A stretch of 64,000 bases of DNA, taken from Cyanophora paradoxa CCMP329 (taxonomy: Eukaryota > Plantae > Glaucophyta). The DNA is taken from NCBI GenBank assembly GCA_004431415.1, contig QPMI01000527.1:62001-126000 (forward strand), written 5' to 3'. The position numbers were made by a program, and so were the translations under genes. How positions within the stretch are numbered: position 1 is the stretch's first letter; each line of letters opens with the position of its first letter. Shown one piece after another: positions 35,049 through 64,000 of the stretch. The notes under the pieces are model-generated. The model was given only the letters and a program-made list of their open reading frames with translations. It ran no database searches and was not told the origin of the DNA.

Positions 35049-38000
35049 ATGCAAGCATTGCGGAGCCGACTGTCTGCCGAGCTTAGGGAGATGCAATGCG
35101 CAGCTGCGTCAGAACGCTGATACGAGCTTGACTTCGAATGCAGGGCCGAAGAGGAGCAGGCCGAGGTGGCAGCAGAGGAAACGCCCCGCAGCGCAGTACC
35201 CCTCTGGCGCCAAGCTTTCTTCAAAAAGAAGCAGCCGGTGGGGGCTGGTCAGGCTGCGCAAGCGTCAGAGAGGGCCAGAAGCGAAGCTATAGCCGCCGCC
35301 GCCGATCCGCGCCTCGATGCCGCCGCCCCGCCCGGCCGCATGCGGCGTGCCTCCCGTGCGCGTATTTCCTTAGATCTTTCCCTGGAGTAGTGTGAAGCCC
35401 TCGTCCGGCGCCACCGCCCCCGATAGCTAAGCAATAGCAAGTTGCAATGAGCAAGTCGGGACGCGCGGCGCGGTTCGAGTTCGATGCCGAGGTGGTGCCG
35501 CGCGTCACGGAATGGGTGGCGGAGGCGCGTGCGCTCTTCGCGCGGTCCAAGGTGGCGGAGGCGCCCGCGGAGTGGGCCCTGGGCCTCGAGGACGTCATCG
35601 AGGGGATCACGGTGCGGGGCGTGTGCCGGCGCGGGCCCCGCGGGGCGGCGGGCGCGACGGGGCGCGACGGGGCGGGCGTGGGCAGGTCTCGTACGCGGCG
35701 CGGCTGGTGGCGAGCCTGGTGAACGAGTACGAGGCGGTGCGGCTGGAGAGCGCCGGGCTCCTCGTCGCACTCGCCTCCCTCCTCGGGCCGGCCCCGCTCG
35801 AGGAGGCCCCGGCCCGCGCCGCCGTCGACGCCTTCCGCGCCGACGAGAGCGGTGCGCACGCCGCCCGCCCGCACCGACAGCGCCAGCCGCCGCCGGCCGC
35901 CTCCGACCCGACGGGGCAGGCTTCAACGACGCGGTGCACGGGCTGATGCGGCTGGCCGGTCCGCCGCTGTGCCGCGGGGCGTTCGGCTCGGCGCTGGTGG
36001 CGGCGCTGGAGGGGTACTACGCGCACCCGGACCTGGCGGTGCAGCGGGCGGCCATCGCCGCGAGCTCGCGTGTCATGGCGGAGGGCGCGGACGCGTTCGG
36101 CGCCGAGATCCACCCCGCCGGCGTCTACGCCCTCTTCTTCCTGCTCGACGTGCCGCCCCCCGCCGGCGCCCTCGCCGCCCTCGACCCCCGCCGCCTCGCC
36201 GTCGTCGAGGGCCTCGGCCTCCTCGCGCCCCTCTACGCCGCCTCCGACGGCGCCCTCGCCGGCCACGTCCTCGCGCGGCTCCTGCAGGCCCCCGCCGGGG
36301 GCGCCCGCGAGACCGCCGCCCTCCAGCGCGCCCTCGCCGCCATCTTCGGCTGCTGCGCGGGGCCCGGGCCCGGCCGGCCTCCGGGCCGCCTGGGGCGCCC
36401 TCCTCGCCGCCCTCTCGGGGCAGCCGGCGGGGAGGAGCGCCTCGGGCTGCTCGCCTGGGCCGCCGCCGAGCTGCTCCGCGCCGCCCCGCCCGGCCCGCCG
36501 CCCTCCCCGCCGCCGCCGCCCTCCACGAGGCCACCGCCCAGGCGAGCGTTCCCCCGTCGCGCACCGCCCCGCCCCACCCCGCCCCCCGCCCCGCCCGGCG
36601 AGCGGGGCGCGCAGGTGCTGCAGCACTGCCGCGGGCCCTCGCCCGCCCTCCGCTACGGCGCCGCCGCCCTCCTCGCCGCCCTCCTGCACGCGTATCCCCC
36701 GCTCGTCGTGCGCGTAACCCCCTCCGCCCGGCCCGACACGGCCAACCACCCTCGCAGGACGAGTGCCCGGACCCGGTCTTCTTCCCCCTCTTCGTCGGCT
36801 GCTTCGTGCGCGGCGCCCCGGGCAGGCGGGGCGGGGCGTGACGCGGGGGGCTGGGGGGTACAGGACGCGGACCGGTCGGTGCGGCGGCTGCACCTCACCA
36901 TGCTCGCCACGCACGCGGAGGCCAAAGTACGCCGTACCCCTCCCCGCCCCTCCCCCGCCCACGCCTGATCTGACTTCGTTCGCCCCCAGGGCTGGCGCGC
37001 CGTCTACCGCCCCGTGAACAGGCAGCCCGGCCCCGCCCCGCCCCGAGCCCCGCGCCCCCCTCCGCCCCTCTCTTAGGCCGCCTCTCAGGTACCTCTCGGC
37101 GTACGCGGGGTACCGGGACGAGGAGGAGGAGCGGGAGGCGGCGGAGGAGGCGAAGGGCATCCCCCTCGTCGTCAGCACCGCCGAGGCGCGCGCTTTATAA
37201 GAACTCTAATCAATGAAGTCTTCTACGGATCTAATCTAAAAGGAGTCTTCTATCGCCCCCTCCGAGTCTTCCACCGCGCCCCGCCACCTCCGCCCCGCCC
37301 CCCCGTCCCCGCCCCGCCCCCGCCCCCGCCGCCCCCGCCGCCACGCGAACGACCACGCGAACGCCACGCGAAGAGCCTTCCCCGCCCGCCCCGCTGCCCC
37401 GCCCCGCCCCGCCCCCTCCGCCCCTCCGCCCCCGCCGCCCGGGGCTGACGTGCCCCGCCCGCGCAGCAGGCGGAGGAGGGCCCGGACCTCGCCGCGGGCC
37501 TCCGCGAGGCCCTCGCCACCGCCGCCCGCCTCGGGCCCCCGGTGCGCCCGCCAGCTTTGGACCCCTCGCCTCAGCCGTGGACCCTCACCGCCTCCGGGGC
37601 CGGCGCAGGTGGAGCCGCGGGCCCTCCAGGCCCTCCTCAGCGCCATCCCCCACGAGCCCCTGGTGCCCCCGCCCCCGCTCCCCACAGATCAAAGATCTTA
37701 GATCAGATATCTGCTAAGCTCTTTTAAGTTCATTCGATTCGATTTATAAGATATAAGATGGTGCCCCCGCCCCCGCTCCCCTACGATACAAGATCTTAGA
37801 TCGAAGATATGCTAAGATCTAACCTCCTCGAGCCTGGCGCGTTCGCTGAGGCTCCGACTCGCTCGCGGCAGGAGCGGCAGCGGGAGGGGATGGGGATGGC
37901 GGCGATGCTGGCGGGGCGGCTCGCGGCGTGCCCCGCGACACTCGTGGCGGCGCTGCTGGCGCCGCTGCTCGCGCCGGCGCCGGACCGCGCCCTCGCCGAG

Positions 38001-41000
38001 GCCGCCTTCGCCGCCCTCGCCGAGGCCGCCCCCGCCCTCGCCGCCGCCGGCGAGCACGCCCTCGCCAGGCCCGCCCGCCCTCTCTCTCTTGAAGGATCCT
38101 AAGAGCTCTCATAAGAGATCCTAATAAGGACCATGCAAGGATCTTAAGAGCTCTTGTTAGAGTCTAATCTAAGAGCTCTCATAAGAGATCCTAATAAGGA
38201 CCATGCAAGGATCTTAAGAGCTCTTGTTAGAGTCTAATCTAAGAGCTCTCATAAGAGATCCTAATAAGGACCATGCAAGGATCTTAAGAGCTCTTATGAG
38301 AATCTAATCTAATCTCACGAGCGCAGCGTGCACGCGCACGCGATGCGGCTGCTGGCGGCGGCGGCGGACGCCGGGGACCCCGCGGCCGGCGCCCTCGCCC
38401 CCGCCCTCCTCGCCGCCGCCGCCCGCCTGCCCCTCGAGAAGCTCCCCGCCCCGCCCCGCGCCGCCCTCCTCCGCGCCCTCCTCCGGTGCGCCTTCGATGG
38501 GATTCTTATAAGAAACACACTAAGTTCTTCTAAGAAAGACACTAAGTTCTTATAAGAAACACACTAAGTTCTTATAAGAAACACGCCGAGCCCGCCCGCC
38601 CCCCTCACTGGCGGCTCGCCCTCGGCCGGCAGGCTCGCGTACCACCCGTCGCCCCCCGTGCGGGCGGCCGCCTACGCCGCCGCCGCCGCCGCCGGCCGCC
38701 TCTGGACCGCCGAGGTCCGCACGGGAGCCGGCTTACTTATTGGCCGCTTACTCACGCCCGGACAGCTCGCGGACCTGCCGCTGGCCCTCCTGTTCGTGGC
38801 CCTTGGGGACCGCCACCCGCCCAAGCGCGCCCCGCCGCCCGCACCGTTCGTTCCGTCTTGTTTCGTTTGTTCGCTCACGATTTCGCGCAGCGCGGCGGCG
38901 GCGGCGGACGCGCTGGAGTCGCTGCTGGCGGACCGCGGGCCCTACGCGCCGGCGCTCGCAGCTGTGCGGGAGCGCCGCGCGGGCCTCGCCGCCCGAGACG
39001 ACCCGTCCCGCCTCCACGCATATCCTCCGCCCCGCCCCGCCCCGCGCCGCTCGGCCCCGCTTCGCCCTTGACCGCCCCGCGCCACGCTCGACGCGATCGC
39101 GAACGCGATTGTGGGACTCGGGAGCAACTCGCTCCTCTACAGGGTGAGAATCCCGAAGGATCTAACATAATAATCGCATAGGATAAATCCGGATCGGGTC
39201 GCAGAGCTTCTCGGACGAGGGACTGCGGGAGCTGGTGACGGCGGACCTCGCGCGGCCCCTCCCCATCCTCGCATCCGACCTGCCGCCGGCCGAGCGCGCC
39301 CCGCCCTCGCCCGCCGCCGACCCGGCGGCGGCGGCGGCGGCCCGGGGCCCCTCGCCGGCGCGGGGGCCGAGGAGCGGCCCCATCTGAGCGCCTGGGCCGC
39401 GCTTCTCTACAGCAAGCTAGGGGCCACCCTCACGGCGCGCCGCCCCGCCCGCTCCCGGCGGCCTTCGCTTACGGGCCGGCGCGGCAGGTGACGGCGGAGC
39501 AGCAGCGGGCGCTGGAGGGCGTGGCGCGGGCGGGGCAGCCCGTCCACCCGCTCCGCCTCCTCCGCCCCGCACTCGCCCACCCCAACCCCGCCGTGCGACG
39601 CCGCCCGCCCCGCCCGCCCGCCCGCCCGCTCCGCCCCGTCGAGTAAGAGAGCGGGCGGCAGGTACGGCTGGCGGCGTGCGTGGCGGTCCGGCGCGCCTGC
39701 TTCGCCGCCGACGCCGTAAACTTCGCCTCTCTCGCCGAGGCAAGACTAGAATCTTATAAGAATCTTATAAGAACTTCTTTGAGATTCTAATAACGAACCG
39801 CCAGGCGGTGGACATCCTCCTGCCCTCGCTGCTCGCGACGGCCGCTGCGGTCCCCGCCACGCCGCCGACGGCCTCGGCGACCTCCGGCGTCCCCGGGACC
39901 CCCGGCCTGCTCTCGGCCACGACGGGCAGCGCCGTGCCGCCCACGCCGCGCACGCCGGCGCAGGCGCCCCTCGCGGCTCCCTTCGCGTCGCCCCTGGCGC
40001 TCGGGAGCCCCGGGCCCGGGGGCGCCGGCCCGCCCAGCATCACCCTCTCCACGCCGGCGGGCCCGGGGGCCGGCGCCGGGGCCGAGCGCCCCCTTGACCG
40101 GGGCCTGGACGAGCCGCACCTCGCAGAGTGAGATTAGATCCCGCGCCCGCCGCGCACCCGCCCGCCCTCGCTCAGCCTGGTGCAGGGCGGCGCTGCTGGT
40201 CTTCGCGCAGCTCGTCCCCTTCAAGATCCGCGGCCTCAACAAGCTCGTGCGCGCGGCTTTAGGCCGTAAGCTCTCCGAGCCTTTCTCCGACCGAGGCGGG
40301 GCGGGGCCACAGGTGTGCGACCAGGCGCTGGAGCCTTTGCTAATGCTCATCGAAGACGCCGGCGACGTGGCGGCGGCGGCCGGCGGGCTCCCCTCCGCCT
40401 CGGGCCGCCGCGCGGGGCCCCTCTGCGCCCGCCGCGCCATCGAGCTCGCCGAGGCACGCGTATACGTACCCCCCTCCGTCTTCTCCCCCTTCCCGGCGTC
40501 TAAGCTTTCTTTTTCGGCGCAGGCGCTGCTGCTGGCGTGCCCTGCCGCCTTCACCGACTCGATCGAGCGCCTCCGCGACGCGCTAAGGTGCCGCCCGCGC
40601 GGGCGCCAGCCCCGAATTTGATCCGCGCAAACCGAATTCGATCCGGCGGCAGGCGCGCCATCGTGCACGCGCCCGAGGAGGCGGGGCGGGCGGCCGAGCG
40701 GCTGTACCCCCTCGTCTTCCGGGCCGCGACCTCGGGGGGCGACGCGGAGCTCGGGCGCTCGTTCGTGGGGTGCGCGCGCCCCAGAGATAGCCCAAGGACG
40801 CTAACCGTTAGACCCTTGTGTTGCTCGCGCTCGGTTCTTCTCGTCGCCTCTGACCCTCCAACTCTTCTCTTCTCCGGCGCACGCGGGCGCAGGTACGCGC
40901 GGGGGGACGTGCAGCCGGCGCTGGACCCGCGCTGGGAGAGCCCCGCCGACCACATGCTCGCCGGCCTCTCCCTCCCCCAGCTCCGCGGTGCGCGTACCCC

Positions 41001-44000
41001 TTTGCTCTCTCCCTCCAGAAGAGGACTCCCTCTAGATCTGATCCGAGATCCGACCGGATCTAACAACGACGACCGCGACCCGCCGGCGCAGTGCTGGCGG
41101 TGGCCTCTGTGGACGCCCTTGGGGCCGTCATGGACCCCCGGGTACGAGCTCTTTTAAGCTCCCCCCCCCCTCCCCCCCTCCCCTCCCCCTCTATGATGCT
41201 ACGATGATCCAGCATCCATCCGATTTCCCCGAAGCCCCCGCAAAGAATCTATCTGACGGGGCGGAGCGGCGGCAGCCTATAAGACGCCCCCTATATATCT
41301 CAGAAGACGACCTTTTTAAGCTCCAAACTCTTCTTTGCGAATCCGTCCGTCTCTGAACGCGCGGGGGCAGCTGGCGGCGGGGGTGCTGGAGGAGGTGCTG
41401 CCGCTGCTGCACCACGCGGAGCCGGCGCTCCGCCTCGCCGCCCTCGAGGCCGCCCTCGCCCAGGCAAGGAGGAGTCCCATGGAGCCTAAATTTGAGAAGA
41501 ACCTAAAATTAGGCCGCCCCTGCCTTAGCTCTTAGATCTAAATTCCCCGCCTTATGTTGAGAAGAACCTGATAGCTCTCACATAGCAAGAAACTAAGCTT
41601 CTCGCCTGGGCGGGGGTGGCCTCGTCGAGGCCGTCCTCGCCCAGGCGCGCCCCTGAATCCCGCCCATCTCAGGATTTAGAACTCTAGATTCCCCGCCTTA
41701 TGTGCCTTCTTCCTGACTCGATTCCTCCTCCTCACGCCCGGGGCAGCTGCCGCAGGCGGAAATTTGAAAATAAGTTTAATAAGCCCCAGATCTCAGGATT
41801 AAGAGCTCTAAATATCCCCCGCCTGATGTGTCTTCCTCCCGATTCCTCCGCCTTAGACTCCCGGCAGCTGCCGCAGGCGGAGAAGGCGGAGGTGCTTGAG
41901 GAGGGCCCGGGGCCGGCCCCCGCCGCCACCGCCGCCGCCCGCGCCGTCTGGGTCGCCCTGCCCCTCCTCGCGGACCCCGTCGGCGAGGTGCGCACGAATC
42001 CGAACCCAACAAAGCTCACCCAACAATCCGAACCCAACAAAGAAGCTTTACAAAACTAATAACGAATGCTCCCCCCGCTGACCCCGACCCCGTCGTCCCT
42101 CCCTATTTCTTTTCCTTCGGCCCGACGATCGCGAGCCCCGCAGGTGCGGGCGGCCTGGCGCCGGTACCTCGCCGGCGTGGCGGGCCTCCTCGACCACAGG
42201 GTGCGTCCGCAGTGTGTTCTCTTTCATTCTAGTCAAGAGGACGCAGGGCGCGCCCGCCCCGCCTCGCCCGCCCGCCTCTTCCTCTTCCCTTTCCGTTCCT
42301 CGCGCCTCATCCTCTCGGCGCGCGCAGGCGGCGCTGCTGCCGGTGGACGCGGAGGCGAACGACGCGATCGTCGCCGCGCTCTCCTCCGGCGCCCGCGCCG
42401 CCCCCTCGTCCGCACGCGCCCATAAAAATAAGCGAAAGCATAGCGAAAGCATAATAAGCCTCTCATAAGAACCTCCTAATAAGAACCTCGTCCGCACGCG
42501 CCCTCCCTCGAGAAATTAACCTAGGGAAGCACAATAACAAGAACCGAGCACCGCCTCGCCTCGCCTCGCTTTGCTTTTCTGAGGGGCGGGCGGCAGGGCG
42601 CGCGGGGCCGGGGCCGGGGCCGGGGCGGCGGGGGCGGGCGGGGTGCCCCCGACGCCGCGGCAGGCGGGGGCGGCCGCCCTGCGGCTCGCCGTCACAGCCG
42701 CCGGCTTCGAGTCGGGCCTCACCCAGGCCCGCCCCGCCCCGCCCCGCCCCGCCCCGCCCCGCCCGCTCGCCCCTCGCCCGACGCGACCAGCGCAGACGGT
42801 CCTGCCGAAGCTGGTGGCGCGGCCGGAGGCGCCCGGGGCTCCTTTCTACCTCGCCCCGCCCCCGGGCTACGAGCTCAACGCCCGTTCCCCCCGCGCCCGC
42901 CCGCCCGCCTAAAATCTTAGACAGGGCGTCTAATTAGAATCCAAGCAGCGTTCCTAGACCCGTTCTCCCGCCCACCGGTCTTGACGTCCCGTGCGCAGAA
43001 AGAGGAGGCGGGTCCGCCGCCGGCGCCCAACGGCGCGCTCCTCGAGCGCATGCAGGTGCGCATGCGCGCCCCAGCAAATGAAGAACGCTCACAACAAGAA
43101 GAAGAATGCGCCCCTCCACCAGTCCGCCCCTGTCCTGACCGCGCGCGCTCGCTCCGTTTCGCAGTCGCTCCATTAAAATATTAGAATCTAAGAATCTTAG
43201 AATCTTAGAATAAGAGCAAGTGAAGCGCGGCAACACAAGGACCCGCCCTGACCGCGCTCGCTTGGCTTCGCAGTCGCTGCTGAACTCGCTGCGGGCGGCC
43301 GGCGACGGGACGCCGGCCTCCCTCGCCGCCGCCGTCGGCGACGAGGCCGGGCAGGTCCGTCCAGGGCGGGGCAGGGCAGGCCCCGCCTTCTCCTCCACTG
43401 CAGGCCGCGGCGGCGTGGGCAGGGCAGGGCTTAGAGGCCAGAGGGTAGGCTATGCTAGAGGGCCCGCCTCCCGATGATGTGCAGCCGAGTCGGGAGGCGG
43501 CCCGGGCCGCCTCGCCTAGCCTAGCCGGAGGTCCGTCCAGGTCCGTCCGTCCAGGGCGGGGCCCTAGCCGAGCTTCCTCCGGCTGGGCTAGGCGGGATCG
43601 GGAGGCTGCGCACCGGGAGGCGGGCCATCTCGCCTAGCCTAGGGGCTAGGCTTGGCTAGAGAGCCTAGCTAGGCTAGGGCAGGGATTAGAGGCAAGAGGG
43701 TAGGCTAGAGGGCCCGCGCGCCTCCCGATGATATGCAGCCGAGTCGGGAGGCGGCCCGGGCCGCCTCGCCTAGCCTAGCCGCCTAGCCGCCTAGCCTAGC
43801 CGAGCCTAGTCGCCTAGCCTAGCCGGAGAAAGCGGGAGGGCCTACCGCCGCACCTCCTCCTCCCCCCGCCTCGTCTTATCTCACCGTCTCCCCCACCCCC
43901 CTCCCCCCCCGCCTCGTCTCATCTCACCGCACCCCCGCAGGCGGCTGTGGCGTACCACCTGGACTGCTTCCGGGCGCTGAACGACCCCCTCCCGGGCGCC

Positions 44001-47000
44001 GCCCTCCTCGCCCTCTCCGAGCTCGCCGCGCTGCTCCCGGCCGCCGTCGGGCCCAGCGCCCTCCAGACCCTCCTCCAGTCGGCCGCCCGCCAACTCGGCC
44101 CCGCCACCCGCCACCAGGTGAAGCGAGCGAAGAAGAAGAAACCAATCCTAACCTGACCTAACCTAACCAAACAAATCTAAACAGATGCAGACATAAACTA
44201 ATGCAGACATAGAAACCAAGCAATAACAGTCTAACTAATTCTAAACTAACTCACTAATGCAACTGAAGCTTCTAATCAATATAAGCCAAGCTAAGCAATC
44301 CTCGCCCAGGTGCTCCCGGCGTGCGTGGGGCTGGTGAACCTCTCGCGGGCCTCCAAGGAGCTCTTCGAGGAGGCGGTCGGCGTGCTCGGCGGGGCGGCGG
44401 CGGCCGCCGAGGGGCAGCTCCTCGCCCTCCGCGCCCTCGTGCCCCTCCTCGCCCAGGTGCGGCCCGCGCCGAGCCGAATGGCATTCTTTGGGAAAGATCT
44501 AGCATGACCCTTCTAGAGGCAATAGTTGGATAAGAGGCAATCTAGCAAACAGTCTCTAGCGAATAATTTGAAGAGCGGTATCTAGCAAGAACCTTCTAGC
44601 TAGAAGCAATCTAGTTTGATGAGAGTCAATCTAGCAAACAGTCTCTGCGGATCTAGATTTAGGAACAAGTTAGGAAGAAGCAATCTAGCAAACAGTGTCC
44701 GCGGCCTCCTCGCTGAGCCGCGCGCGTTTGTACGGCCGCAGCGGTGCAAGGAGCGCGCGGACCCCATCGCAACGCACTACGCCCAGGTCCGTCGGGCCTC
44801 CTCCCAGTCCTAGACCGGCCCCCGGGCCTAGGCCCGGCCCCTCCCCGTCCCTCCAGCCTCCAAATGAGCTCAGTGACTTGAATTTGTGCGCAGTTCCTGA
44901 ACCGGACGTCGGCCCCCCCCGAGACGCGCCGCGCCGCCATGGAGCTCATCGGTACCCCCCCCTCCCTTCCTTCCCCCCACCCCACCCTACCCCTTCCTTT
45001 CTTTACTGAAACTTCGTTCGCAGGGGAGCTGGCGCCGCTCGTCTCGCCGGCCACCGTCTCCGCCATCGCCGAGAAGGCCCGCCCCGTCTAAGCCTAAGTC
45101 TCCAAAAACAATACGAAAATTTATCTAGAAACCGCCCAAGAAAGAGAATCCATAAGAAGTTTCCACCAAAACAGGAACGAATCTATCTAGAAACCACCCC
45201 ACCCCGCCCCACCTCTCGTCGCTGGCCCTGGCCGGCTCTCGTTGCCTCGTTTGCTTCTCGTCGTGCTCAGCCGGCCCGGGCCGCGAGCAGGTGCGGGAGA
45301 TGCTGGAGCAGGCCCTCGCCGGAGGCGGAGGCGGAGGCGGAGGCGGAGGCGGATTCGAGGACCAGGCGAGCCGCCCGACCCCCATGACTCCGATCTGTCC
45401 AACCCGATCTGACTTCTCCGCGGCCCGCAGGTGCTGAAGTTCATGGGGCAGGTGCCGCGGGAGCACGGCATCGTCCTCCGCCTCCTCGACGAGGCCGCCG
45501 CCTCCCTCCCAAGGTCCCTTCCTTGGATCTTTCTAAGGACCGCTCGAGGGGCCTTGCCGAAATCCCATAAGAACTTTAAGGATACCACAAGATGCCTCTT
45601 CTCTGACGCCTCCGGATCCTCTGACACTTCTTCGCTCTGACGCTTCCCTTCCCCTTCCCCCTCTTCTCCGCAGCGCGGCGGACGAGCGGCGGGCGAAGGC
45701 GGCCGTCCTCTTCCGCGTCGTCGCCAAGCACGCCCCGGCGCGCCCCGCCCGGCCCGACAACAAGACTCTGATTAGATTGGATATAAGCTCTTGGATCTTA
45801 GAGATCGTCGCCCCGCCCCGCCCCGCCCCGCCCTTCCCTGTCTTCTGAGGCGGCCCGGCCCCTCCCCCGCAGCCCGAGAAGGTCATCTACTTCGTGCTGC
45901 ACCTCCTCGCCGACCCCTCCCCCCGCGTGCGCCCTCCCGCTCGGCCCCGCCCTCTAGTAGTAGTGCTCCGTCTAGGCGGCCAGGCGGGCGGTCGGTCGGT
46001 CCAGCCTCTGGTCGATGGTTGATTCGATCCCCTCGCTCCCCCCGGCAGCTGCGGGAGCGGGGGGTACGGCTCATGCTGGACCGGCGCGCCCTCGGGTCCG
46101 CCCTCTGCGACCCGCTCCGCGCCATCCTCACAGAGGTGCGCGTACCCCCCTTACCCCCCCCCCCCCCCCCTTCCGAGAAAAAGGTTTGAATGTTAGCGCC
46201 GCGCCCCTTTGCTCCGCTCCGCGCGCAGGCCGGGAACGCCCTCCTGAAGGCGGCGACGGCGGGGGGCGCCAAGGGCGCGAAGCTCGTCCCGATGCTCACG
46301 CCGCCCGCCGCCGCCGCCGCCGCCGCCGCCCCGCCGCAGCCCGCCCCCGAGGTCCGTGGGACCCTCTGCAAGAATGCTAGAAGAGAATCTAAAATCTAAT
46401 AACTTGCTAGAAGAGAATCTAGAGGGCCTAAAATCTAATAACTTGCTAGAAGGGACCCTCTGCAAAAATGCTAGAAGAGAATCTAGAGGGCCGCTTGACT
46501 ACGCTTCGCTTTCTTCTCCGCTGAGGCCCGCCGGCAGCTGGCGACGGGTCCGCTGGCTGGGCGCCTCTCGCAGTGGGCCGGGCGCGTGATGGCCTCCCTG
46601 CACGGCGCCGGCCCGGCCCGCGGAGGGCACGGCGGCGGCGGCGTTCCCGGTACCCCCGCGACGCCGGGCACGCCCGGCACGCCCAGTACCCCCGGGGGGC
46701 CGGGCCGGGGGTCTGGGTCCGGCATCGCTGGGGACGGCCTGCCCGAGGAGATGTGGGGCACGCGGGCCGACCCCTGCAACGCCGCCCTGCTCTCCTCGCC
46801 GGCCTACCAGGCGGCCGCCCGCGCCTACGGGCTGCCCCCCGCCGCCCTCCGCATCCCGGAGAACGCGGCGGCCGCCGCCGGCCGCATGCTCGCCGGAGCC
46901 TCCAAGTCCAAGGTGGGCTAGGGCTAGGGCTAGGGCTAGGCTGGGCTAGCCGACGGCGGCCTCGGGCTGAATCGAGCGGCAGCTAGGCTAGGGGCTAGGG

Positions 47001-50000: not shown

Positions 50001-51223
50001 TCTAGATCTACAACAGCTAACAACCTAGTTACAACAACGAACTCTAAGAACCTAGTTAACAGCAACTAATGATATCAACGGGCGCAGGTTCTGGGACGAT
50101 CCGGACGGGACGGTCCGCCTCTCCGCCATCCAGTCCGCCCAGGTGCGCATGCGGCGCCCCTAGACACGACCCTAGACACGACCCTAGCGGAACTTCAAGT
50201 GACGCGGCACGGCGCGTTTGAGAAGTGACGCGACACGGCGCGTAACTATAAGCTCTACGCGAAGCAGAGCAGCTCTATAAGCGGTGTCCCTCGCGGAGCT
50301 TAAGCTTCGAAACGTAGCTAAAGTGGAGCAGAGAGCTCGAGGGGCGGCCGCGGGGCGGGCTCGAAGCGAAACAAATCGAAGCAAAGCAAAGCAGCTCGTG
50401 TGATCAGCGTCACTAATTATAAGCTCAACGCCAAGCAGATCTAGAGGGAACCAAGCAAAGGGGCGCGGATCCTAATCAATCAAGCGGAGGGGCGCGGATC
50501 TCAGTTTCCGATCGACTAGTGCTAGCTTTAACCAGATAACACCTATAGCTACATCCCGAAAGTGCGGGCACCCTGGGCCTTTATTACCCTGAGCCCCGCG
50601 CGCGCGCAGCACCTGGCGGAGGTGGCGCTCCCGGAGCTGGTGGCACTGGCGCAGCCGGGCCCCGGGGGGGCCACCGCGCCCCTCGTCGAGGCCATCGCCG
50701 CCCGCGTCAAGATGCCCGACTACCGCGAGAAGGTGCGCGCCGGATTTCGAATCCAACGGCGCTCAATCGGACATCTGCGGGCTAGATCCGTGCTATATAT
50801 ATGTGCATGAAGCTCGAGAGTTTTCGGTTCAAGGCCGCGCCCGCCCGCCCGCCCCTCACCCACCGCGCCCGCCCCGCAGGAGCCCCTCAACGCCCTCCTC
50901 AAGTGGTGCTTCGGGCGGACCGTGCGCCCCGCCCCGCCGATCCGGTCGGATCAAATCTGATCCGATCTAATTTGATCTGGTAGGTGCTGGGCGAGGCGCG
51001 CGGGATGCGGCACCAGGGCTCGGCCCTCCTCTCCCCCAACGCCTCCACCTTTGCCGGCACGCCCCGCGGCGGCGGTGGTGGCGCCGCCGGCGGCGGCGCG
51101 GCGGCGGCGGCGCCCACGCCCCGCGGCGGCAAGGCAGGAGACGCAGCACCGCCGCCGGGGCCCAGCCCGCGGGCGGCGGCGGCGGCGGGCGGCCCCGGCC
51201 CCGCCCCGCGAAGAGCGGGCTAG
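35049..51223 (+). CDS. Very large multi-exon HEAT/ARM-repeat protein of unknown family; start uncertain
   Basis: Dozens of short exons with HEAT signatures: HPDLAVQRAAIAA, GPSPALRYGAAALL, HPSPPVRAAAY, LLHHAEPALRLAALEAAL, LLADPVGE|VRAAW, FWDDPDGTVRLSAIQ. The last exon is VLGEARGMRHQ...RRAG*. This could be more than one gene. Confidence 0.7.
38099..38310. repeat. 70-bp tandem repeat x3 (intronic)
   Basis: Units start at 38099, 38169 and 38239 (ctaagagctctcataagagatcc...). Confidence 0.95.
38505..38585. repeat. ~22-bp tandem repeat (cttataagaaacacactaagtt) x3.5, intronic
   Basis: Read directly. Confidence 0.85.
43430..43780. repeat. ~95-bp direct repeat plus CTAG-rich microsatellite-like tract in an intron
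   Basis: Copies at ~43431-43527 and ~43686-43781. Confidence 0.85.
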
Positions 51224-52369: not shown

Positions 52370-55300
52370 CTATGCCCAGCGGCCGAGGATCGCCATGACG
52401 GCTGCGCCGAGCCACAGGGAGACGACCAGGAAGAAGACTGCGGCGAAAAAGAAAGAAAGAAGGGGCGCGGTCAGCTCAGAAAGAAAGACAGAAAGAGAGA
52501 GATATATAGAGAGGATCAGCTCACCGATGCGGGCGCGCTCCTTCTGAGCCTTCTCGAAGGCCGGAGTGATGAGCTCGACAACTGCGGCGAAAGCTTGGGT
52601 CAGGGCCGTTGATCTTTAAATTTGATCTCCATGGGGCGCACGGGCGGCGTGGATGAGGATGCCGCCGGCGATACACTCGATGATGCCCTCCACCAGCACG
52701 CGCGTCTGCGCGAGCGCGCGGGGCGCGGAGCAAAGTTCAGGCGGGGATCCGATCATGAGGGCCGCCCAGGCCGGCGGCCGCGGGCAGACGATGGCTGACG
52801 GACCGTCGACGTCGCGTTGTACGTGTCGTGGATGCCGATGCCGATGGCGACGCCGAGGGGCGTCGCGAGGCCGTAGGGGATCATCGTGAGGAGGGGCAGC
52901 GCCCAGCCCCGCACGATGCCGGCGCCCAGCACCGCCGCGGAGAGCGCGATCCCCTCAAAGAACTCTGCGCGAACAAAGTCAGATCTGAGCCCTCGGCTAT
53001 GCGAGGGAGGGGAAGAAGGAAGGAAAGCACGCACGGTGGATGGAGACGGCGATGAGGAGCGTGTTAAAATTCTCGCGCGCGATGCCGAGCATGATCCCGA
53101 TGATCACCGAGTGCGCCGCGATCGCAACCTGGGTGGTTCCGAGGAGTTATCAGAACCGATAATAGAAAATTTTCATCCTTAGACGTGAGGGCACCCACCT
53201 CGAGGGAGACGAGGCCGACGCGGCGGCGGCGCTCCTCCTCCGTCATTGCGAGGCTCTGCACGGCGGGGCCCTGCGGCAGACAGACGAACGCTCAGCACAA
53301 GCAAGCTCTATAAGACGCTAAAAACAGCGAGCGGGATGGACCTGGGGCAGCGGGATGAAGCCCAGCAGCTTCCTCCGCTTCTGGCTCTTCGCGGGCGCAA
53401 GGGACGTGTCCGAGGGGACGATGACGGCCGCCTGCTGGACCACCGGCTTGCCCACTTGCACCGTCACTGCCGCGCCCCGCGTCGCGTCGGCGCCGGCCGC
53501 GCCAAGGGAAGGGGAGGCGCGCGGGCGGACCGTCCGTGCACGCGTTCTCGAGGTCGGGTTTGACGAAGTCGCCCTTGCCCAGCTGCGGGCGCGGCGTGTG
53601 GTGGTCGTGGTTGCAGCCGGGGTCGCTCGAGTCGGGGCTGTGGCCCTCGGCGCCGGGGCCGGCCATCGACTCGTGCTTGTGGTTGCCCAGGTGCGCGTGC
53701 GGCATGAAGCGGCCCACGACGAGCTCGATGGCCTGTGGTACGTTCGCGTCGTCAGAGTCGGGGCGCGCGGGGCCAGCGAGCCGCTGAGCCAGGAGCGGCG
53801 CACTTGGATGAAGAGAACGCCAATGAGGACGAAGAGGCCGCCGAAGGACTCGTACTCGCTCCACGTGGCGCTGATGCACGGCGACTTGAGCAGCTCGAAG
53901 CCCGGCGGGATCATGTGGATCAGCGCTGCGAGGCGAGCCGCGTCGGCGTCGGCGAGGTGCGAGGGCGGGGCCGGCGGCGCGGACCGGTGGTCAGGATGAC
54001 GCCGGCGCCAAAGACAGCGAGGGCGCGCATGAGGAGCTGGGGCAGGGCGAGCCGCGGCTTGTAGTATGCCAGCACGGGGTACCCTGGCAGCCGGCGGGCC
54101 TCAGCGCTCGCTTGAAAGCACCACGGGACAGGGCGCACCGGAGCCGGCGACAGAGACGGCGAGCTGGAGAGTGCGGGCGGGGGGGTCAGCGAGAGGGTTT
54201 TAGAGGGGCGGTGCGAGGACGGGGCAGCCGGGGGCGGACCAGGATGAAAACGGCGGCCTGTCGAGAAGCGAGCGGAGATCAGGCGGGCCGGGCCAGGGGC
54301 GAGCGCGAGCAGGGCGGGGCGCACGATGTGGAGCGGGCGGTCGTAGTTCTCAGTGCCGGCCGACGAGGCGGCGCACTCGTCCTCCTCCTGCATGCACTGG
54401 CAGCTGACGGGGCTCATGAAGGGCAGGCCCGACGCGTCCTGCCCCACGTCGCACATCAGCTGGCCTGCGACGGGACGGACGGAGTGAGTCTTGATCAGCT
54501 AAAATTCGGGATCGGGATGGGGATGGGGATCGGGATCGCGATCGCGCACCCCCGGCGCAGCCGACGAGCAGCTCGTGGATCGGCTCGCGGGCGGGCGGCG
54601 TGATCGCCTGCTGCAGCATCCTCCTCCCGCTGGCGCCGGCCTTAGAAGTCGGGAGAGCGATCGCCTGCTGAAGCCTTCTCCCCCTCGTGCTCGCCTCCTC
54701 CTCGCCCTCGTGCTCGTCGTGGTGCTCGCCCTCCTCTTCGCCCTCCTCGTGACCGTGGTGCTCCTCCGTGCTGGTCGAGTTGGTCGCCGTCCCGTTCGTC
54801 TCCGCGTGGGATCCCTCGACGTGGCCGTGGTGCTCATCGTCCACGTCGTGCTCGTGGGAATGAGTCCCGTTCTTCGCCGACGCGGTGCCGTTCGTCTCCG
54901 CAGAGGATCCCTCCGCGTGGCCGTGGTCGTGATCGTCCTCGTCCTCCGTGTGTGTCGCGTTCTTCGCAGCGCCGCCGGCCTCGGCATGGCCGGCATGATC
55001 TTCGTGGCCCGCCTCGCCCTCCTCGCCGGCGTGATCGTCGTGGCCATGATCGTCGTGGCCCTCCGCTGCGGCGCCGAGTCAGGAGTCAATGACGATGTCG
55101 GTCCAGAGATTTGATCGACGCGAGGCACAGAGGGAGGGGGGGCCCGTCTAGCATCACAAAGCGCGGCGATTCGAGAGATCATGAAAGCAAGTGCTCGCAC
55201 CGAGCTGCGTACGCCAGGCGGTGCTGCACTCGCTAACCAGCTTGTCGAGGGTCAGCTGCACTTTGGTCTCGTTGAGCGCCGCGTGGTCAATCTCCTTCGC

Positions 55301-56025: not shown

Positions 56026-59000
56026 ATGGCCATAGACCGGCGGTCCTTCAAGAGAGGGGAGCCGAAGGACAACAAGGACAAGGCTAAGCTCGATTTTGAG
56101 CGGGAGTGGTCTATCTTGCGTCCTTTTCTCCCGCTCAACCTTATCGCGCGGTGCGCCGCATGTACCGCCAAACGCCAAAACAAGCTCGCAGGCTGCGCAC
56201 TCTAGATTTGTCGCCGGACGGCGGCGCTGGCTTAGCTGGCTGGTCATGAGCTCAGCATTCTCTCCATTGCGCTGCTCTGACAAAGCGCCCCCGCGCTGTT
56301 CGGGCCCGCAGACACAACACGAACCCCACGCCGGTGCACACCCAGGGCGAGAAGGAGCCCGACAACAAGGCAGACTTTGAGCGCTTTGCAGCATGCCTCC
56401 TCGTGCGCACACGCGCCCCCAGGATCCCTAGCTAGCGCCGTTCCCCATGCGCGGCCCCGTTCTGACGAGGAGGCTTCCCCGCACAGTTCTGCGACATCAA
56501 GGTGCACATGCCCGCTGTATTGCAGGACGCGCTCTCCCCACGCGCGCCCCGCTCACGCGCCGGCCACCCGCCGTATCTCGGTCGCAGGGTTTCACGGTTC
56601 GCTGGCCTTTCCGCTCTGGCGCCCGCTGTTTCGAGCGGCCCGCGCGCAGGCTCTGATGGAGAAGCACTCGGCGCTGGGCAACGCAGGCATCGAGCAGCTC
56701 TCCAACGTCATCTCGAGCACCTTCGGGCCGCAGATCGACACCATCCACCGCTTCATGGGCGACGTCATCTGCGTGGACGGTCCGCCTCCCCTCCCGCCTG
56801 CCCTCCCGCACGCCCTCGCGGGCGCTGACCGGCCCCGGGCGGCCCCGCAGGCGACGCCCTGATCGTGATGGCGCGCCCCGCCCCGCCCCGCCCCGCCCGC
56901 CTCTTCTCTCTTTCTTATCTTTTTCCCTTCTCTGTCAGTTCCGGGAGGAGCGCAACATCGACACGGTGAAGGGCAAGGACGGGCTCTTCTGGGCGGTCGT
57001 CCGCGGCGCCCAGTGCGCCCTCGCCCTCGTCTCCCAGAAGTACCCCCCAGGTGCGAACGAAGAAGGAAAAGAAGAAGTAGCGGGCTGCCGCGCCGCTCCT
57101 CTCCGCCGCCCCGCGCCCTCGCCCCTCTGAGCTTGCTCGGCCTCGCCCTGCCGCAGCGCAAGAGAGCCGGCCGGCGGCGGCGGCCGCCGCGATGCGGAAG
57201 ATGAGCATGGCGCCGGGCTCCAAGGCTGAGGGCTCCATGTACAACCGCCGTGCGCCCTTATTATGCTACTACGCTTTTTCTACTTATACTGTGCAGGGCC
57301 GTCGCTGGAGCCGGGGGCGGCGATGATGCCGGGGGGGCCCGGCGGGGGCGGGGAGCAGCAGGTCCTCCTGACCAAGGTCTCCGTGGGCGCCGGCGAGGTC
57401 GTCGCCATCCAGGCCGGCATGAACCCCAAGGTAAGAAGAAGGAGGGGGAGAAGTCATTATCTAGAGAGAATGAATGCTAGAACAGCTTAGAACAACTAGA
57501 ACACGGTCCGCTGCAACGAGGGGGAGGAGTTTTCTAGATAGAGTGAACGCTAGAACAACTTAGAGCTGCCCGCCGGCACTGCCCGCCCGCCTGGCTGGAT
57601 ATCGTGCCCTCCTTTCCTCTGCCGCCCTTGTTCTCTCGCTCGCTCACTCGCCTCGGCGCGGCGCCGCAGCACGTGATGGGGAGCACGTTCCCCGGGCGCA
57701 AGTTCTACATGATCGGGGGGGCGCCCCTCACCCAGATCGGCGAGATCGAGCACCTCTGCGGCTCCAACCAGGTCGTCACCAGCCGGTGCTTTCTCTCTTT
57801 CTTTCTCTTTCTTTCTCTTCCTTTTTAAAGTGTTCTTTCCTCAGGTTCGTCTGGCGGGACGTGGGCCTGTCCAGCGTTGCGTCTGGTACCCCCATCCAGG
57901 GCCAGACCGCCTTCCGCCTTGAATCGATCACGGACCTCCCCATCTTCCTCGCCTCGGACCGGCCCGTCGCCGCTTCCTGTACCCCGGAGGCCCTGCCCAT
58001 GCTCCAGACCTTCGTGCCCTACGCCGTCCGGACGCGCCTCTCGGCCGCCGTCGGCAACGGATTCGTCCTCAACCGGGGCGCCTGGATGCAGGTCCGTCCG
58101 CGTCATCGGGCGGCTAGCTAGGCACGGCTAGGCTAGAGGGGGCGTCGCCCGCGTCCCTCTCTCTCAGCACCCCCGCCGCTCCGTCCCTCGCGTTCTGACC
58201 CCGACCTTCTCGCCTCCTCCTCCTCAGGCCAACTGGCTGGCCGAGTTCCGCGTCATCACCTCGGTCTTCGTGCAGGTGCTCGCGCTTAGAGAGTAGGATA
58301 GGACACCTCTCCGCTCAATGGGACCCAAAGCCCCCGCCCCGCCCTGTCCCGCCCCGCCTCACCCTCCTCGCCTCAGCTGGGCGTGGACTTCACGGGCCCC
58401 GCCCCGCGCGACGGCGAGCTCGCCGAGCTCGTCCAGAAGTGCACCATCGCCATCCAGAAGGTCCGGGAAGATCCTCCCCCGCCCGGCCCGCCCCCAACGG
58501 AGAGCCAGCTAGCCAAGCTGCAGCTAGCCGGCCTAAGCCTTATCAAGCTAACATGCAACGCCGTCGCAGGTGGTGTACCGGCAGGAGGGCTCGCTGCAGT
58601 CCCTCGTCGTGGACGACAAGGGCTGCATCGCCCTCGTCGCCTTCGGCCTCCCGCCCTTCTCCCACAAGGAGGACCCCCTCCGCGCCGCCCAGGTGCGGGG
58701 TGGGGAGGGGAGGGGACCTAGGGGGCGGGGCTGGAGGGCTTGGAGGGGCCTAGAGGGGCCCAGGCGAGCCCACACGCCCGCCCGCCCGCCCGGAGGGAGA
58801 GGGGCGGGGGGGGGGGGGGGGTACCGCCCGCTTCTTCTATGGGCTCGCCGAGCGTTGGCTCGTGCTCTCCGCCGTGCTTCGGGCTCGCCTAGTAGTGCTG
58901 GCTACTAGTGCCCTCCGCCGCCGATCTATCCGTCTACATACCCCCTCGCCTAGCCCCCCCCCTCCCCCCCCCCTCTCTGGGCGGAGCTGGAGGGCCTAGG

Positions 59001-62000
59001 AGGGGGGCCTTGAGCCCCCCATGCGAGCCCACCCGCCCACCCGCCCGCCCGCTTCTCTTCTCCTTCCGCCGCCTATCTGCCAATCCAATCTGACCAGCCC
59101 GCCCGGCCGGCAGGCGAGCCTGGACATCGCGTCGAGCCTCAAGTCGATGGAGGTCGGCTGCTCCATCGGCATCTCCACGGGGCGCGCCTTCTGCACTCTC
59201 GTCGGCAACGAGAAGCGCTGCCAGGTGCGAAATAACCGTAATACATTCTTCGTTCAAGGCTTCTTCGTACTGCTAACGAGGAGCGAACCAGTACGCCATC
59301 TACGGGGACTCGGTCAACGTCGCGGCGCGCCTGATGCAGCGGGCGGCGGGGCGCGTCGTCTGCGACTCGTCGACGTGCGACGCCATCCGCTCCAAGATCG
59401 ACGTCAAGAGCCTGGGCGGCGTCGTGTTGAAGGGCAAGCAGCAGGCGCGTGTAACAAGGACTCTAGAACTCTAATAGAACCTTCGTTTCGGTCTTACTAA
59501 ATTATAAGCGCAGGCGCGGGAGCACTTTGAGATCTGCTCGCGGAAGCGGCACGCCTCGTACCGGGAGCGGGACGCCGAGGGCGCCGCCAAGCGCCAGCTC
59601 AAGATGATCGGCCGCGAGCAGGCGAGCGCTCTCCCGCGCCGACGCCGCCGTCGCCGCCGCCGCCGCCGCCGCCGCGCCGCGCTCCCTCGCTTCTAAGACT
59701 ATCTATCTATCTATCTATCTACAACTCTTCACACTATAATCCGCCCCCACAACGCCCCCTCCTACTAACTGACCGCTTCCCTTCTTCTACTTCTTCTTAG
59801 GAGCGGGAGGCGCTGGAGGCGGCGGTGCAGCAGCTGGTGGCCGCCCCCGCCTCGGAGGGCCGCGTCTTCATGCTCGAGGCCGACACCGGCATGGGCGCCT
59901 CCACCCTCCTCAAGGTCTGCGAGAAGCTAGATAGATAGAAGAGGAAGATTAGCCAGAACAGGACCGGGTTTGCTTAGATGATATAAAGATACTTAAGAAG
60001 CTAGAATAAGAGTAGAAGGAACTTAAGGATCGGGTCCTCCTCCCTCTTCCTCCCCATATAAAAGATTGAAAGAAAGATGCAAAGATCTTTTATCTGCTGA
60101 TCCTCTCCTCCCTCTCCTAACCCCTCGCCCCCCTCAGGCGGTGGTGGCGGCGGCGGACGCGGCGAACGTGGGCGTGTACACGGGCGAGGCGAGCGTCCAG
60201 GAGCAGCGCTCCGCCTGGCAGCTCTGGTCCCAGGTCCGCCCCACCCATCCGGTTGACTAGACTGGCGGCTGGAGGCGTATTGAAACGGGCCCCCCTTCTT
60301 CTCTCCCCCTCCTCACTCACCCTCTCCTTCAGGTGGTGAGCCAGGCGCTGCAGCTGGGGGAGCGCCCGCCCGACTCGGACCCCTCCATCTTCAACGACTA
60401 CGTCATGTCCTTCTTCGAGCCCGAGGACGAGCGATTCGTGCGCGGGAGCTTAAGCTCGCTTGAGCATAAGAGGCTCCTTGTTATCCATCTTAATGAGAGC
60501 ATAGAAAGAGAGAATGTTCGGCACCGAGACAACGAGAAGCTAACTAACGCACCCGCCCGCGCAGGTCCCCCTCCTGTACGAGATCATCCCGGACCACGCG
60601 CTGGACTACGCGCGGCACCCGCACCTCAAGAAGATGCTCCCCGAGGGCCGCCTCCGCCGCCTCGCCGCCCTCATCAAGAAGCTCCTCCAGAGCGTCTGCG
60701 CCAAGGTGGGTGGAAGGAAGAAGGAAGGATAGATAGATCTAATCTAAGTCCAAGTCTAACGATCTGCAGGCGCCCAAGCTGCTGGTGATCAAGGACCTGC
60801 AGTGGGGCGACTCGAGCAGCCTGGACCTCCTCTCGCAGCTGGCGCGGGAGCCTCCTCCGGGCCTCCTGCTCGTCATGTCCTGCCGCCCGGGCGCCGCCCA
60901 GGGCAGCGGACTCCTCGCCTCCCAGCAGGTGCGGCGAGCGAGCGGCGTTGCCGGGCCCCGACCCTCTAGCTACCAGCCTCTAGCCGCGCCCTCTAGCTAG
61001 CTAGCTAGTCCCGCCTTCTAGCTCTGGCCTCCTTTGCCCCGCGCCCAACCCCCCGCCCGCCCGCTCGCCCGCCTAACTCGGCCCGGCAGGTGCGGCTGAT
61101 GCGGCTGCTGCCGCTCTCGAAGGTGGACACGGCCTCCCTCGTCGCCTTCTACCTCAGGGAGGGCGGTGCGTAGACGAACCCGAGCGCACAAGGCCGAGTC
61201 TTCGGCCCCGCTGAGGCGCCCGCTCGCTAGCTACCCGGGATCTAGCCGGCCCTATTATGATTCCTTCTATCATTCCTGAGGCGCCCGCCCGCTTGCTCGC
61301 GCAGCCAAGGTGCTGGTGCCGCCGGAGATCGTGCACTGGATCTACGAGAAGTGCCAGGGGAACCCCTCCTACACCATCGAGATGTGCGCGCCTCCCGCCC
61401 GCCCGCCCGCCCGCCCTCCTAGATCGAACTCCTAGATCGCCTCCTGGATCGGGCGGAGCTAGATCGGGCCGGCGCTAGATCGATCGCCTCCTAGATCGAG
61501 CGCGCGAGCCGAACGGGTCGCCCTCCGTCAGATCGCTCGCCCGCAGCGAGCGAGCGCGCCGCCCTCTCCTCGCCCTCTGACCTCTCGGGCAGGTGCGAGC
61601 ACATCATCTCGTCGGGGACCGTGCGGATCGACCCGCCCGTGCGGGAGGGCGACCCCTTCACCTGCCTCCTCGTCCGCTCCCTCGACGCCGACGTCATCCC
61701 CAAGGTAGCTAAGAATAGCTAGGCCGCTCGTGGGCCGGGCCGGGGCTAGGATGGATGGCTGGGGCTAGAGAGGCGGCTAGGCTAGGCTAGGCTAGGCTAA
61801 AGGGGACTCGACGTCTCCCCGCTGCCTTCCTTTCTCGCCTGAATCCGCCCCTGCAGAGCATCCACTCGGCGATCTGCGGCAAGATCGACAAGATGAGCGA
61901 CATGCAGCAGCTCATCGTCAAGGCGCGCCCTATTATTTATTGTTCCCATCTATCTATTTATTCATCTATCTGAACCTTGTGGCCACGCCAGGTCTCGGCG

Positions 62001-64000
62001 GTGATCGGGAAGCTCTTCTCGGCGGACACGCTCCTCGGCGTCTTCCCCGTCCCCATCGACTCCCAGGTCCGAAGGGGGCGGACAGGCGAACACATAAGGA
62101 CGGGAACAAGATCGGGCGTACAATAGGGCCTCCAATGAGCCTCTTATAGAAGCTGTCCTCCCCGCCACCATTCCTTCTCGCCTCCCCCGCCTCCACTCCC
62201 TCCTAACCTCCTAACCCCCCGGCCCCGCGCAGACGCTCCTGGCCTCGATGGAGACGCTGGAGTCGACGGGGGTCGTGGAGCGCGTGCCCGCGGCGCTCAC
62301 CCTCGCCAACATGCGCTCCGCCTTCTCCGCCCTCGACTCCCTCCAGTGGACCTTCGCCTCCAACATGGTCCGCTTCTCAACTAGCTAGCTTCTTGAATCT
62401 ATATCTATTATTGTTGTTAGATCTCTTATTATTGTTAGTGGACCTTCGCCTCGAACATGGTCCCCGCGCCCCGCCCCCCTCTCTTATGAGATCTCTTACT
62501 GTTAGATCTCTTACTTAGCTAACTAAGTAACCTGCTAGATCTTAGATCTTAGATCTTACTCAGATCTTCTTAGAGCTCTTATTACTGTTAGATCTCCCTC
62601 CAGTGGACCTTCGCCTCCAACATGGTCCGCTTCTCAACTAGCTAGCTTCTTAGATCTCTTAGACTAACTTCTTAGATCTCGTATTGTTAGATCTGCTTTT
62701 CCCTCTTCCTTGCTGTTGCTTATCTGAGTAAACTGACCCGCTACCTCAGGTCCACGAGGTGGCCCTCTCGCTCCTCACGTGCGCCATCCTCCCCTCCGCC
62801 CCCTCTCCTCCCCGCCTCACGCGCGCCCCTCCCTGCCCGCAGGTACGCGTCGCGGTGCGAGATGCACAAGCGGATCGGGGAGTACCTCGAGGAACACTTC
62901 AAGGGCGCCCCCGGTGCGCCAGGGAGGGAGCGGGGCAGCGCGTCCCAGCGCTTAGCAGCACTCTCCACGCCCTGCGCCAGGCGGCCCAGCCTGATAGACC
63001 CCCTAGCTCCAAGCACAGCAGCGCATTGCAGCGCGCCCGCGCTAGGGAAACAAACAGACTCGATTCCTACATCTTCCTAGCTCCACCACGCCCCCACTGC
63101 CCCTCTTACTCGTCCCAGCGCTTAGCAGCGCTCTCTGCGCGCCTTAAAGCGCCAGGCGGCCCAGCCTGCTAGACCTCCTAGCTCCAAGCAGAGCTTCGCG
63201 TTGCAGCCCGCCCGCTAGCGTCACCTCCCCACGACCTCAAATCCCCCCCTGCCCCCCTTTCTCAACTCCTCCCTCCTCTCCCCCCCCCCCCCCCCCCCCC
63301 CCCCCCAAGACGCGAGCGACCTAGACCCCCTAGCTCCAAGCAGAGCAGCGCGCCCGCGCAAGGGAAGCAGACTCGACTCCTGCATCCTCCTAGCTCCACC
63401 ACGCACCCACTGTCCCTCTTGCTCTTTCTCACTCGCCCGCTTTCCCCCCAGACGCGACGATGACGCTGGCGGACTACGTGGTCCTCTCCACGCACTTCGC
63501 CGAGGCCGGCGACTCCCCCGACGTCCTCGAGAAGGTCCCCCGCTTCCCTCCCTTCCTCCTCTCTCCCCTCACTGACTTCGCCCCTTCGGAAGGCCGTCTC
63601 CTACTCCCTCCGCGCCGGCTCCCTCGCCGAGAACAAGGTGCGGAGAAGCCCGACGAGCCTAGCTAGGCTTAGTACCTGAGCACTCTCCTCACCTTGCCTT
63701 TCTCACGCGCCCGCCCCCGCCCCCGCCCCCCCGCGCAGTTCTCGAACCAGGAGGCGTGCACGTTCTACCTGACGGCACTGCACCTCTGCGAGAAGCTCGG
63801 GGAGGCCCGCTCGCCCCGCGTCGCCCAGCTCTACCGCCGCCTCGGCGACGTCCAGGTCCGAGCCCGGCCGCTTTAAGCAGAATTACGTTTAGTTAGGTAG
63901 AAAGAAGAGCGCGCGAGCGAGCGGGGCCGCCGCTGCCTGCGCCTCGCCTGCCGGAGGCTTCTAGCTTACGAGTGGATTCTAAATTAGTAAGACCGATGAG
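56026..64000 (+). CDS. Soluble class III nucleotidyl cyclase of the sAC (ADCY10)/Dictyostelium SgcA type: tandem cyclase domains + AAA/STAND-like NTPase + TPR-like region; 3' truncated by the window
   Basis: Spliced motifs: LLFCDIKGFTALMEK..GIEQLS..GDVICVDGDALIVMF; WLAEFRVITSVFV; EGSLQSLVVDDKGCIALVAFGLPPFSHKEDPLRA; SIGISTGRAFCTLVGNEKRCQYAIYGDSVNVAARLM; LKGK; MIGREQE; IKDLQWGDSSSL; CQGNPSY; MHKRIGEYLE. Confidence 0.88.
62339..62651. repeat. Duplicated exon end + donor site (54-bp copy plus a partial copy) inside a cyclase intron
   Basis: ccctccagtggaccttcgcctccaacatggtccgcttctcaactagctagcttctt at ~62339 and ~62596; partial copy at ~62438. Confidence 0.92.
62941..63420. repeat. Patchwork of 100-170-bp imperfect direct repeats with a poly-C tract in a cyclase intron
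   Basis: cgtcccagcgcttagcagc at 62941 and 63111; tagacc(c/t)ctagctccaagc-like unit x3; cagactcga.tcct.catc.tcctagctccaccacgc x2. Confidence 0.85.

Follow-up and report, generated by a model that had tools for sequence, protein, structure and literature searches.

Repair-mediated duplications in vertebrates leave local direct copies, filler at the breakpoint, and empty sites in relatives, and copies of exons and splice sites can land in adjacent introns (Pace et al., 2009, PMC2671141, citing Thomas et al. for 'doublets'). Staggered double-strand breaks give rise to tandem duplications, with or without templated inserts, through cNHEJ (the classical pathway of non-homologous end joining), polymerase theta, or CST-Pol alpha (PMC5730883, PMC8355091), and plant filler DNA is a mosaic of ~1–130 nt copied from near the break (PMC2686159). 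Direct repeats with filler at splice sites are also left when introns are gained through break repair or through tandem genomic duplication (reviewed in PMC3443670, PMC3296678). Here, we analyze related structures in a 64-kb window of Cyanophora paradoxa tig00021013, the window being the whole stretch of DNA studied. An earlier note on this DNA had described ghost copies of exon ends and donors within introns, separated from the working junction by AT-rich filler, and had proposed that breaks at or near splice junctions drive an intron-expansion system. We find that copies at junctions are a minority of a general duplication process and that a junction-targeted system is not supported.

The Cyanophora duplications resemble each of these systems in part. 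Local direct copies, breakpoint filler, empty sites in a relative, and exon and splice-site copies in the adjacent intron are shared with the vertebrate duplications, but the arms are shorter (median 25 nt), the spacers are stretches of new AT-rich sequence tens of bases long, and the density is ~4 per kb of intron. As in the repair of staggered breaks, the stretch adjacent to the putative break is duplicated over a variable length, extra bases appear to be copied in cis, and rounds seem to be repeated; experimental inserts are usually short, however, and long AT-rich filler is atypical of them. The filler is a mosaic of nearby sequence, as in plants, although maize filler usually accompanies deletions, whereas net insertion dominates in Cyanophora. 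Direct repeats with filler at splice sites also recall the proposed routes to intron gain, but the events seen here enlarge existing introns, and a new intron is not demonstrated. Introner elements and other intron-making transposons likewise leave repeat-flanked inserts at splice sites, whereas the Cyanophora inserts have neither a shared element sequence nor a fixed target-duplication length. The nearby direct source, the mosaic filler, and the empty site in a relative suggest repair-mediated local duplication with filler. Three features are unusual in Cyanophora: how dense the events are, how long and AT-rich the filler is, and how far introns exceed intergenic spacers. We found no paper in the literature describing such duplications in this organism.

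Targeting of splice junctions by intron duplications is not supported

Six genes in the window were modeled by reading frame, giving 131 introns with a median length of 84 nt, 25 of which have GC donors. Gene models and splice sites are thus frame-based predictions; an unconstrained gene finder took several ghosts for micro-exons, which we removed by hand as a matter of judgment. When an event was defined as a set of chained repeat pairs with arms of at least 12 nt within the same intron, we counted 65 events, with median arms of 25 nt (13–99 nt between the 5th and 95th percentiles) and median spacers of 47 nt (up to 165 nt). The events are concentrated in two long genes, at 5.2 and 3.5 per kb; three short genes have none.

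Several results argue against targeting of junctions. First, if each event is placed uniformly wherever its insertion point falls in the intron, 9.3 of the 65 events should touch the donor and 9.3 the acceptor. We observed 10 at donors (P=0.45) and only 2 at acceptors (P=0.003), a depletion. With one event per intron, there were 4 donor and 2 acceptor events versus 6 expected, and the result was similar at three thresholds. Second, in the 57 introns of at least 100 nt, we scored duplication of one-directional anchors, using other introns as the null. The frequency of duplicated anchors sloped upward from exon to intron and did not peak at the junction: 1/54 for exon positions −50 to −29, 5/57 for the exon end, 9/57 for the donor, 13/57 for +8 to +29, 7/57 for −45 to −24, 4/57 for the acceptor, and 1/57 for the exon start. 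The donor and +8 to +29 anchors did not differ (P=0.48), and intron-internal anchors were duplicated as often as junction anchors, contrary to what targeting predicts. One-directional anchors were preferred to interior tiles because both arms enter the tile figure (149/464), which is roughly two-fold too high. Third, the ends of the junction-spanning arms are scattered, from −2 to −31 on the left and from +2 to +42 or more on the right, and the junction events share no fixed breakpoint offset from the splice site; targeting at a fixed offset was rejected. Finally, intergenic DNA also carries such duplications, at a net 0.7–1.7 events per kb compared to 2.6–3.4 in introns, or roughly one-third to one-half the rate seen in introns. 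Together, these results largely amount to the outcome that the earlier note had named as refuting its proposal.

Scanning for complex local direct repeats recovered seven donor pairs, one acceptor pair, and one exon-end pair, together with 75 pairs lying wholly within introns and spread over 22 of them. Its strong junction pairs are approximately those already listed in the earlier note plus a third copy at 62437. Over 30 permutations, junction anchors compared with other introns gave zero matches at the same threshold; sets of dinucleotide-shuffled introns each yielded ~1 event touching a junction.

All eight pairs claimed previously are present where the earlier note placed them (Table 1), but several details changed. 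The ghosts are real, yet 'many introns' amounts to ~10 of the 36 introns of at least 150 nt. The filler between copies is generally AT-rich, except that the spacer of the 43352/43538 pair is GC-rich (0.73–0.74); the 586-nt intron holding this pair contains additional internal copies of up to 107 nt. The 54-bp copy at 62339/62596 is actually 58 nt exact, or ~100 nt with gaps, and its description as a single pair overlooked an older third copy. The acceptor pair at 41742/41863 belongs to a longer, ~95-nt duplication of the 3′ part of the intron (41666–41760 and 41790–41881), of which it forms the end. Three pairs described as exon-end copies include just 2 (37661/37759), 3 (43352/43538), or 4 (42404/42486) exon bases and are therefore mostly copies of the intron 5′ end. 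In addition, the 538-nt intron at 62914–63451 holds two ~100-nt internal duplications and a weak acceptor/exon-start ghost near 63310.

Table 1. Duplications, paralog sites, and host genes in the 64-kb window
Feature	Position	Strand	Description
Donor duplication	37661–37802	+	Arms 37661–37704 / 37759–37802; offsets −2 to +42; filler 54 nt
Exon-end plus donor duplication	41444–41646	+	Arms 41444–41465 / 41625–41646; offsets −20 to +2
Intron 3′-end duplication (~95 nt) with acceptor	41666–41881	+	Includes 14 exon bases; upstream copy retains CTGAC branch-point motif
Donor duplication	42404–42503	+	Arms 42404–42421 / 42486–42503; offsets −4 to +14; filler 64 nt
Acceptor duplication (overlooked in earlier note)	43134–43278	+	Arms 43134–43169 / 43247–43278; branch point, AG, and 5 exon bases
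Donor duplication	43352–43562	+	Arms 43352–43372 / 43538–43562; offsets −3 to +18; GC-rich spacer
Exon-end plus donor duplication	47149–47316	+	Arms 47149–47185 / 47284–47316; offsets −17 to +20; ghost donor changed from GT to GC
Exon-end duplication	49804–49920	+	Arms 49804–49825 / 49899–49920; ghost without donor
Exon end plus donor, three copies	62337–62651	+	Live 62337–62394; older ghost 62437–62463; young exact ghost 62594–62651
Polarized event, ZIP paralog A	20419–20575	+	Live exon end/donor 20433/20434; filler 92 nt, 25% GC (20441–20532); ghost 20533–20575
Paralog B junction, empty (pre-insertion) state of the 20419–20575 event	52780–52821	−	Matched by ghost 20533–20575 of paralog A
Paralog A intron 10	19924–20108	+	185 nt vs 70 nt in B; two mid-intron inserts of ~70 and ~35 nt
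Host gene G1	36615–51222	+	Frame-based model, curated part: 58 exons, 1903 stop-free codons; Ala-rich
Host gene AC	56026–63855	+	33 exons within window, 1074 stop-free codons; continues past window end

A paralog pair retains empty sites

Two inverted genes, named by eye from their sequences as ZIP-type transporters, allowed the direction of change to be assessed. Paralog A (17752–21034, + strand) and paralog B (55438–52370, − strand) have the same 14 introns and have diverged at synonymous (dS 0.21) and nonsynonymous (dN 0.048) sites, with dN/dS ~0.23. Intron 12 is 234 nt in paralog A and 98 nt in B. The segment at 20533–20575 of paralog A matches the exon end, donor, and intron start of B (score 42, P<0.001), whereas the live exon end of A does not match this segment, which indicates that the old junction is the copy lying downstream. 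In A, the exon end and donor upstream, together with the 92-nt filler, would then be the newer part, or may have diverged since. The two inserts in intron 10 of paralog A have 4–5-nt flanking duplications, do not copy exon sequence, and lie mid-intron, and thus the process acts there too. Overall, the paralog supplied empty sites for three larger events, mid-intron and at one junction, and three larger plus several small inserts accumulated in ~1.2 kb of paralog-A intron within a dS of 0.21. As judged by this comparison, filler is AT-rich from the start. For the eight pairs of the earlier note, no relative was found within the window.

Both ZIP paralogs are of the metal-transporter type with a His-rich N-terminal region. 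An 8-nt insert at 17908–17919 in exon 1 of paralog A shifts the frame, the first stop being codon 209 of the joined model, and paralog A may be a young pseudogene.

These comparisons also bear on whether the copies are artefacts of long-read assembly, a reading to which we give hardly any credence. The C. paradoxa genome is 67.6% GC and probably haploid, and was assembled into 712 contigs from PacBio RSII reads corrected with Illumina data (PMC6704402). Errors probably do occur: a stretch at 36373–36423 reads as coding in a shifted frame with in-frame parts on either side, which probably reflects a pair of one-base assembly errors that compensate for each other in GC runs (near 36370–36425). 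Most copies carry substitutions relative to each other, however, one ghost is closer to the other paralog than to its own exon, frames are open across all affected introns, and the assembly was Illumina-corrected. The artefact explanation stays open solely for the 58-nt exact copy at 62594.

Error-prone repair filtered by splicing would account for the pattern

We consider it probable that the copies arise by general error-prone break repair followed by selection for splicing. A break, probably staggered, would occur at any position; fill-in would copy 13–100 nt beside it; and repeated re-priming on nearby sequence, direct and fold-back, would add 0–165 nt of new, mostly AT-rich filler, with end joining, polymerase theta, or strand annealing as candidate activities. 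Selection would then act as a filter: inserts in exons would be lost, inserts between the branch point and AG or creating a second acceptor would mostly be lost, and inserts anywhere past the donor GT or GC would survive. With ancestral introns of only ~65–85 nt and arms of ~25 nt, a surviving first event would very often reach back across the donor; the copy upstream would then be the working one, and the old junction would persist downstream as a ghost. Short introns would thus favor donor ghosts, and subsequent rounds would add nested copies.

Some observations weigh against this explanation. Per kb, events are 2–3.5 times more numerous in introns than between genes. In the subset of events with GC-rich arms and poorer filler, 7 of 11 touch the donor (P=0.001 given current intron lengths). 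The repair explanation gives no reason why filler is AT-rich from birth, internal repeats counted as separate events may be pieces of one filler, and the analysis covers one window and six genes in assembled sequence. The donor skew of the GC-rich subset depends on how selection is modeled. With the same arms placed on short introns resembling ancestral ones, 33% of events straddled the donor (P=0.036), a share that rose to 75% (P=0.89) when purging of inserts from the last 30 nt was also assumed. Purging of the 3′ end is reasonable in light of the acceptor deficit and the distance to the branch point (median 24 nt) but is still an assumption, and the subset is donor-skewed unless it is made.

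An alternative, which is a weak form of the idea in the earlier note, is that breaks or nicks themselves already favor the 5′ part of an intron, or DNA that is transcribed, for example through R-loops or a splicing-coupled lesion, so that enrichment near donors precedes selection. The GC-rich subset and the intron excess favor this possibility, as do a strand skew in the filler of gene G1 (CTAA 94 vs its complement TTAG 21; dinucleotide AC 193 vs GT 73) and a drop in GC content within 10–20 nt of the donor in long introns. On the other hand, the offset is not fixed, the total donor count equals expectation, the donor excess vanishes once 3′-end purging is allowed, the strand skew is missing from the filler of the AC gene (CTAA 14 vs complement 17), and dense micro-scars between genes, described below, may erase intergenic copies faster. 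On balance, we regard such a bias as rather unlikely and favor unbiased breakage followed by splicing selection.

Filler is rich in copies of nearby sequence

AT-rich segments make up 5753 of the 16860 intron bases. They contained 652 nearby direct 8-mers compared to 26–109 in shuffles, 90 nearby inverted 8-mers compared to 11–23, and short palindromes at 1.5–2.2 times expectation. Such an excess of local copies in both orientations is consistent with synthesis that re-primes repeatedly on nearby templates (cf. PMC2686159, PMC5730883). All-against-all BLAST of whole introns was swamped by CCGCC runs, and fillers alone were therefore compared across introns. That comparison found no element shared among fillers of different introns; the top match was 28 nt of the palindromic TCTTATAAGAA repeat, and the remaining top matches were 21–26 nt. 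A shared transposon as the source of filler was ruled out on this basis, and an Introner-like insertion was ruled out by the same lack of a common element together with the variable arm length.

Copying by replication slippage or template switching, with no break involved and with filler growing by repeated slippage in AT-rich runs, would explain why many internal copies are perfect tandems with spacers of 0–10 nt and why filler contains tandem arrays of 70, 22, and 11 nt. This mechanism nevertheless seems very improbable, given the length of the typical and maximal spacers, the enrichment of inverted copies, and the composition of paralog-dated filler, which is 25–37% GC although its surroundings are GC-rich and which lacks a tandem source nearby.

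Three-base scars are probably a separate class

The window also contains small scars of the form X-revcomp(X)-X, in which a short sequence X is repeated on either side of its reverse complement. These are specific to X of three bases, with 128 between genes versus 7–9 in shuffled sequence and 30 in introns versus 8–10. The net intergenic density is 9.9 per kb for X-revcomp(X)-X (+6) and 2.3 per kb for X-C-revcomp(X)-G-X (+8), with examples at 7850–11690 and 15700–17740.

Scars of this kind may be left by excision of a transposon with a 3-bp target, and the large duplications could be failed repairs of the same breaks. Consistent with this idea, five small inserts in paralog A have the scar form or a near variant, including those at 17736, 17763 (in an exon, in frame), 20096, and 20787, filler contains 13 scars versus 2.8 expected, and maize filler has been attributed to excision breaks (PMC2686159). 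Hairpin-derived bases at the insert ends were found only in separate 5–8-nt inserts, however; in the large duplications, the borders between arm and filler carry no surplus of them (6/96 vs 6.8 expected), and hairpin scars as the direct source of large events were ruled out for this reason. Moreover, scars are densest between genes whereas large duplications are densest in introns, and a search of the window for CAC-ended elements with 3-bp duplications returned just two low-complexity chance pairs and no candidate element. Because the scars are intergenic-rich and show no link to the ends of large duplications, we treated them as a separate process. Excision could supply some of the breaks, but failed excision repair as the origin of the large duplications seems quite improbable.

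The upstream donor is predicted to be the working copy

Use of any of eight ghost donors would bring an in-frame stop within 7–41 codons, and the upstream copy is thus predicted to be the one that is spliced. This result fits one part of the earlier proposal, that duplication plus new filler is tolerated as long as one of the junctions still functions. GT or GC is, however, retained in six ghosts, and several have scores on par with the live site; at junction 41464, the donor upstream is weak (0.5 bits), whereas its downstream copy is strong (9.6 bits).

The intron at 41464 also bears on intron gain. Both arms hold AG/GC (41449 and 41756), offering potential in-frame micro-exons of 15 and 9 nt, but the donors that these would need score −1.4 and −2.5 bits, under the 5th percentile of 2.6. 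Because the required donors score poorly, intron gain is possible there but not demonstrated. A bolder proposal holds that breaks coupled to transcription or splicing fall just inside the 5′ splice site, that an unusual polymerase adds long, AT-rich, stop-rich filler, and that some events, such as 41666–41881 with its 9-nt in-frame micro-exon, create introns. We think this combination unlikely, and general repair with splicing selection remains our preferred explanation. Separately, certain introns in 59441–61096 start and end with the same 9–11 nt around CAG/GY (e.g. 60929–61089), which may be a coincidence of splice consensus or intron gain.

Host genes and published models

The probable start of G1 is close to 35446. 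The AC gene may encode a soluble adenylate-cyclase-like protein (cyclase plus AAA/STAND NTPase), as suggested by weak per-exon Pfam hits below curated cut-offs. Our AC model agrees with the published g17068.t1 in 511 of 531 aligned columns, and the exon at 62233–62367 is a 100% match over 45 residues to EukProt C. paradoxa tig00021013_g17068.t1. A 9-nt micro-exon (GFT) at 56588–56596 is required for the cyclase catalytic motif. The published model also contains a 15-nt micro-exon (ELKDR) at 60019–60033, which sits within AT-rich filler and may be a prediction artefact or exonized filler. Elsewhere in the window, an ARM/HEAT-repeat gene with few introns (21600–22890, − strand) resembles a radial-spoke protein by eye.

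Implications

The duplications give no evidence for new targeted machinery; what they point to is an insertion-biased repair spectrum acting at high density in this genome, for which only short introns have been reported (mean 86 nt; PMC6704402). There is a practical cost. The published g17068.t1 ends by reading through the donor at 62368 into a ghost-bearing intron, which reflects either an annotation break or poor splicing, and ghost-bearing introns may fragment annotation in this way. The same introns provide a countable record of short-intron growth and of what splicing tolerates: duplicate donors readily, and duplicate acceptors rarely.

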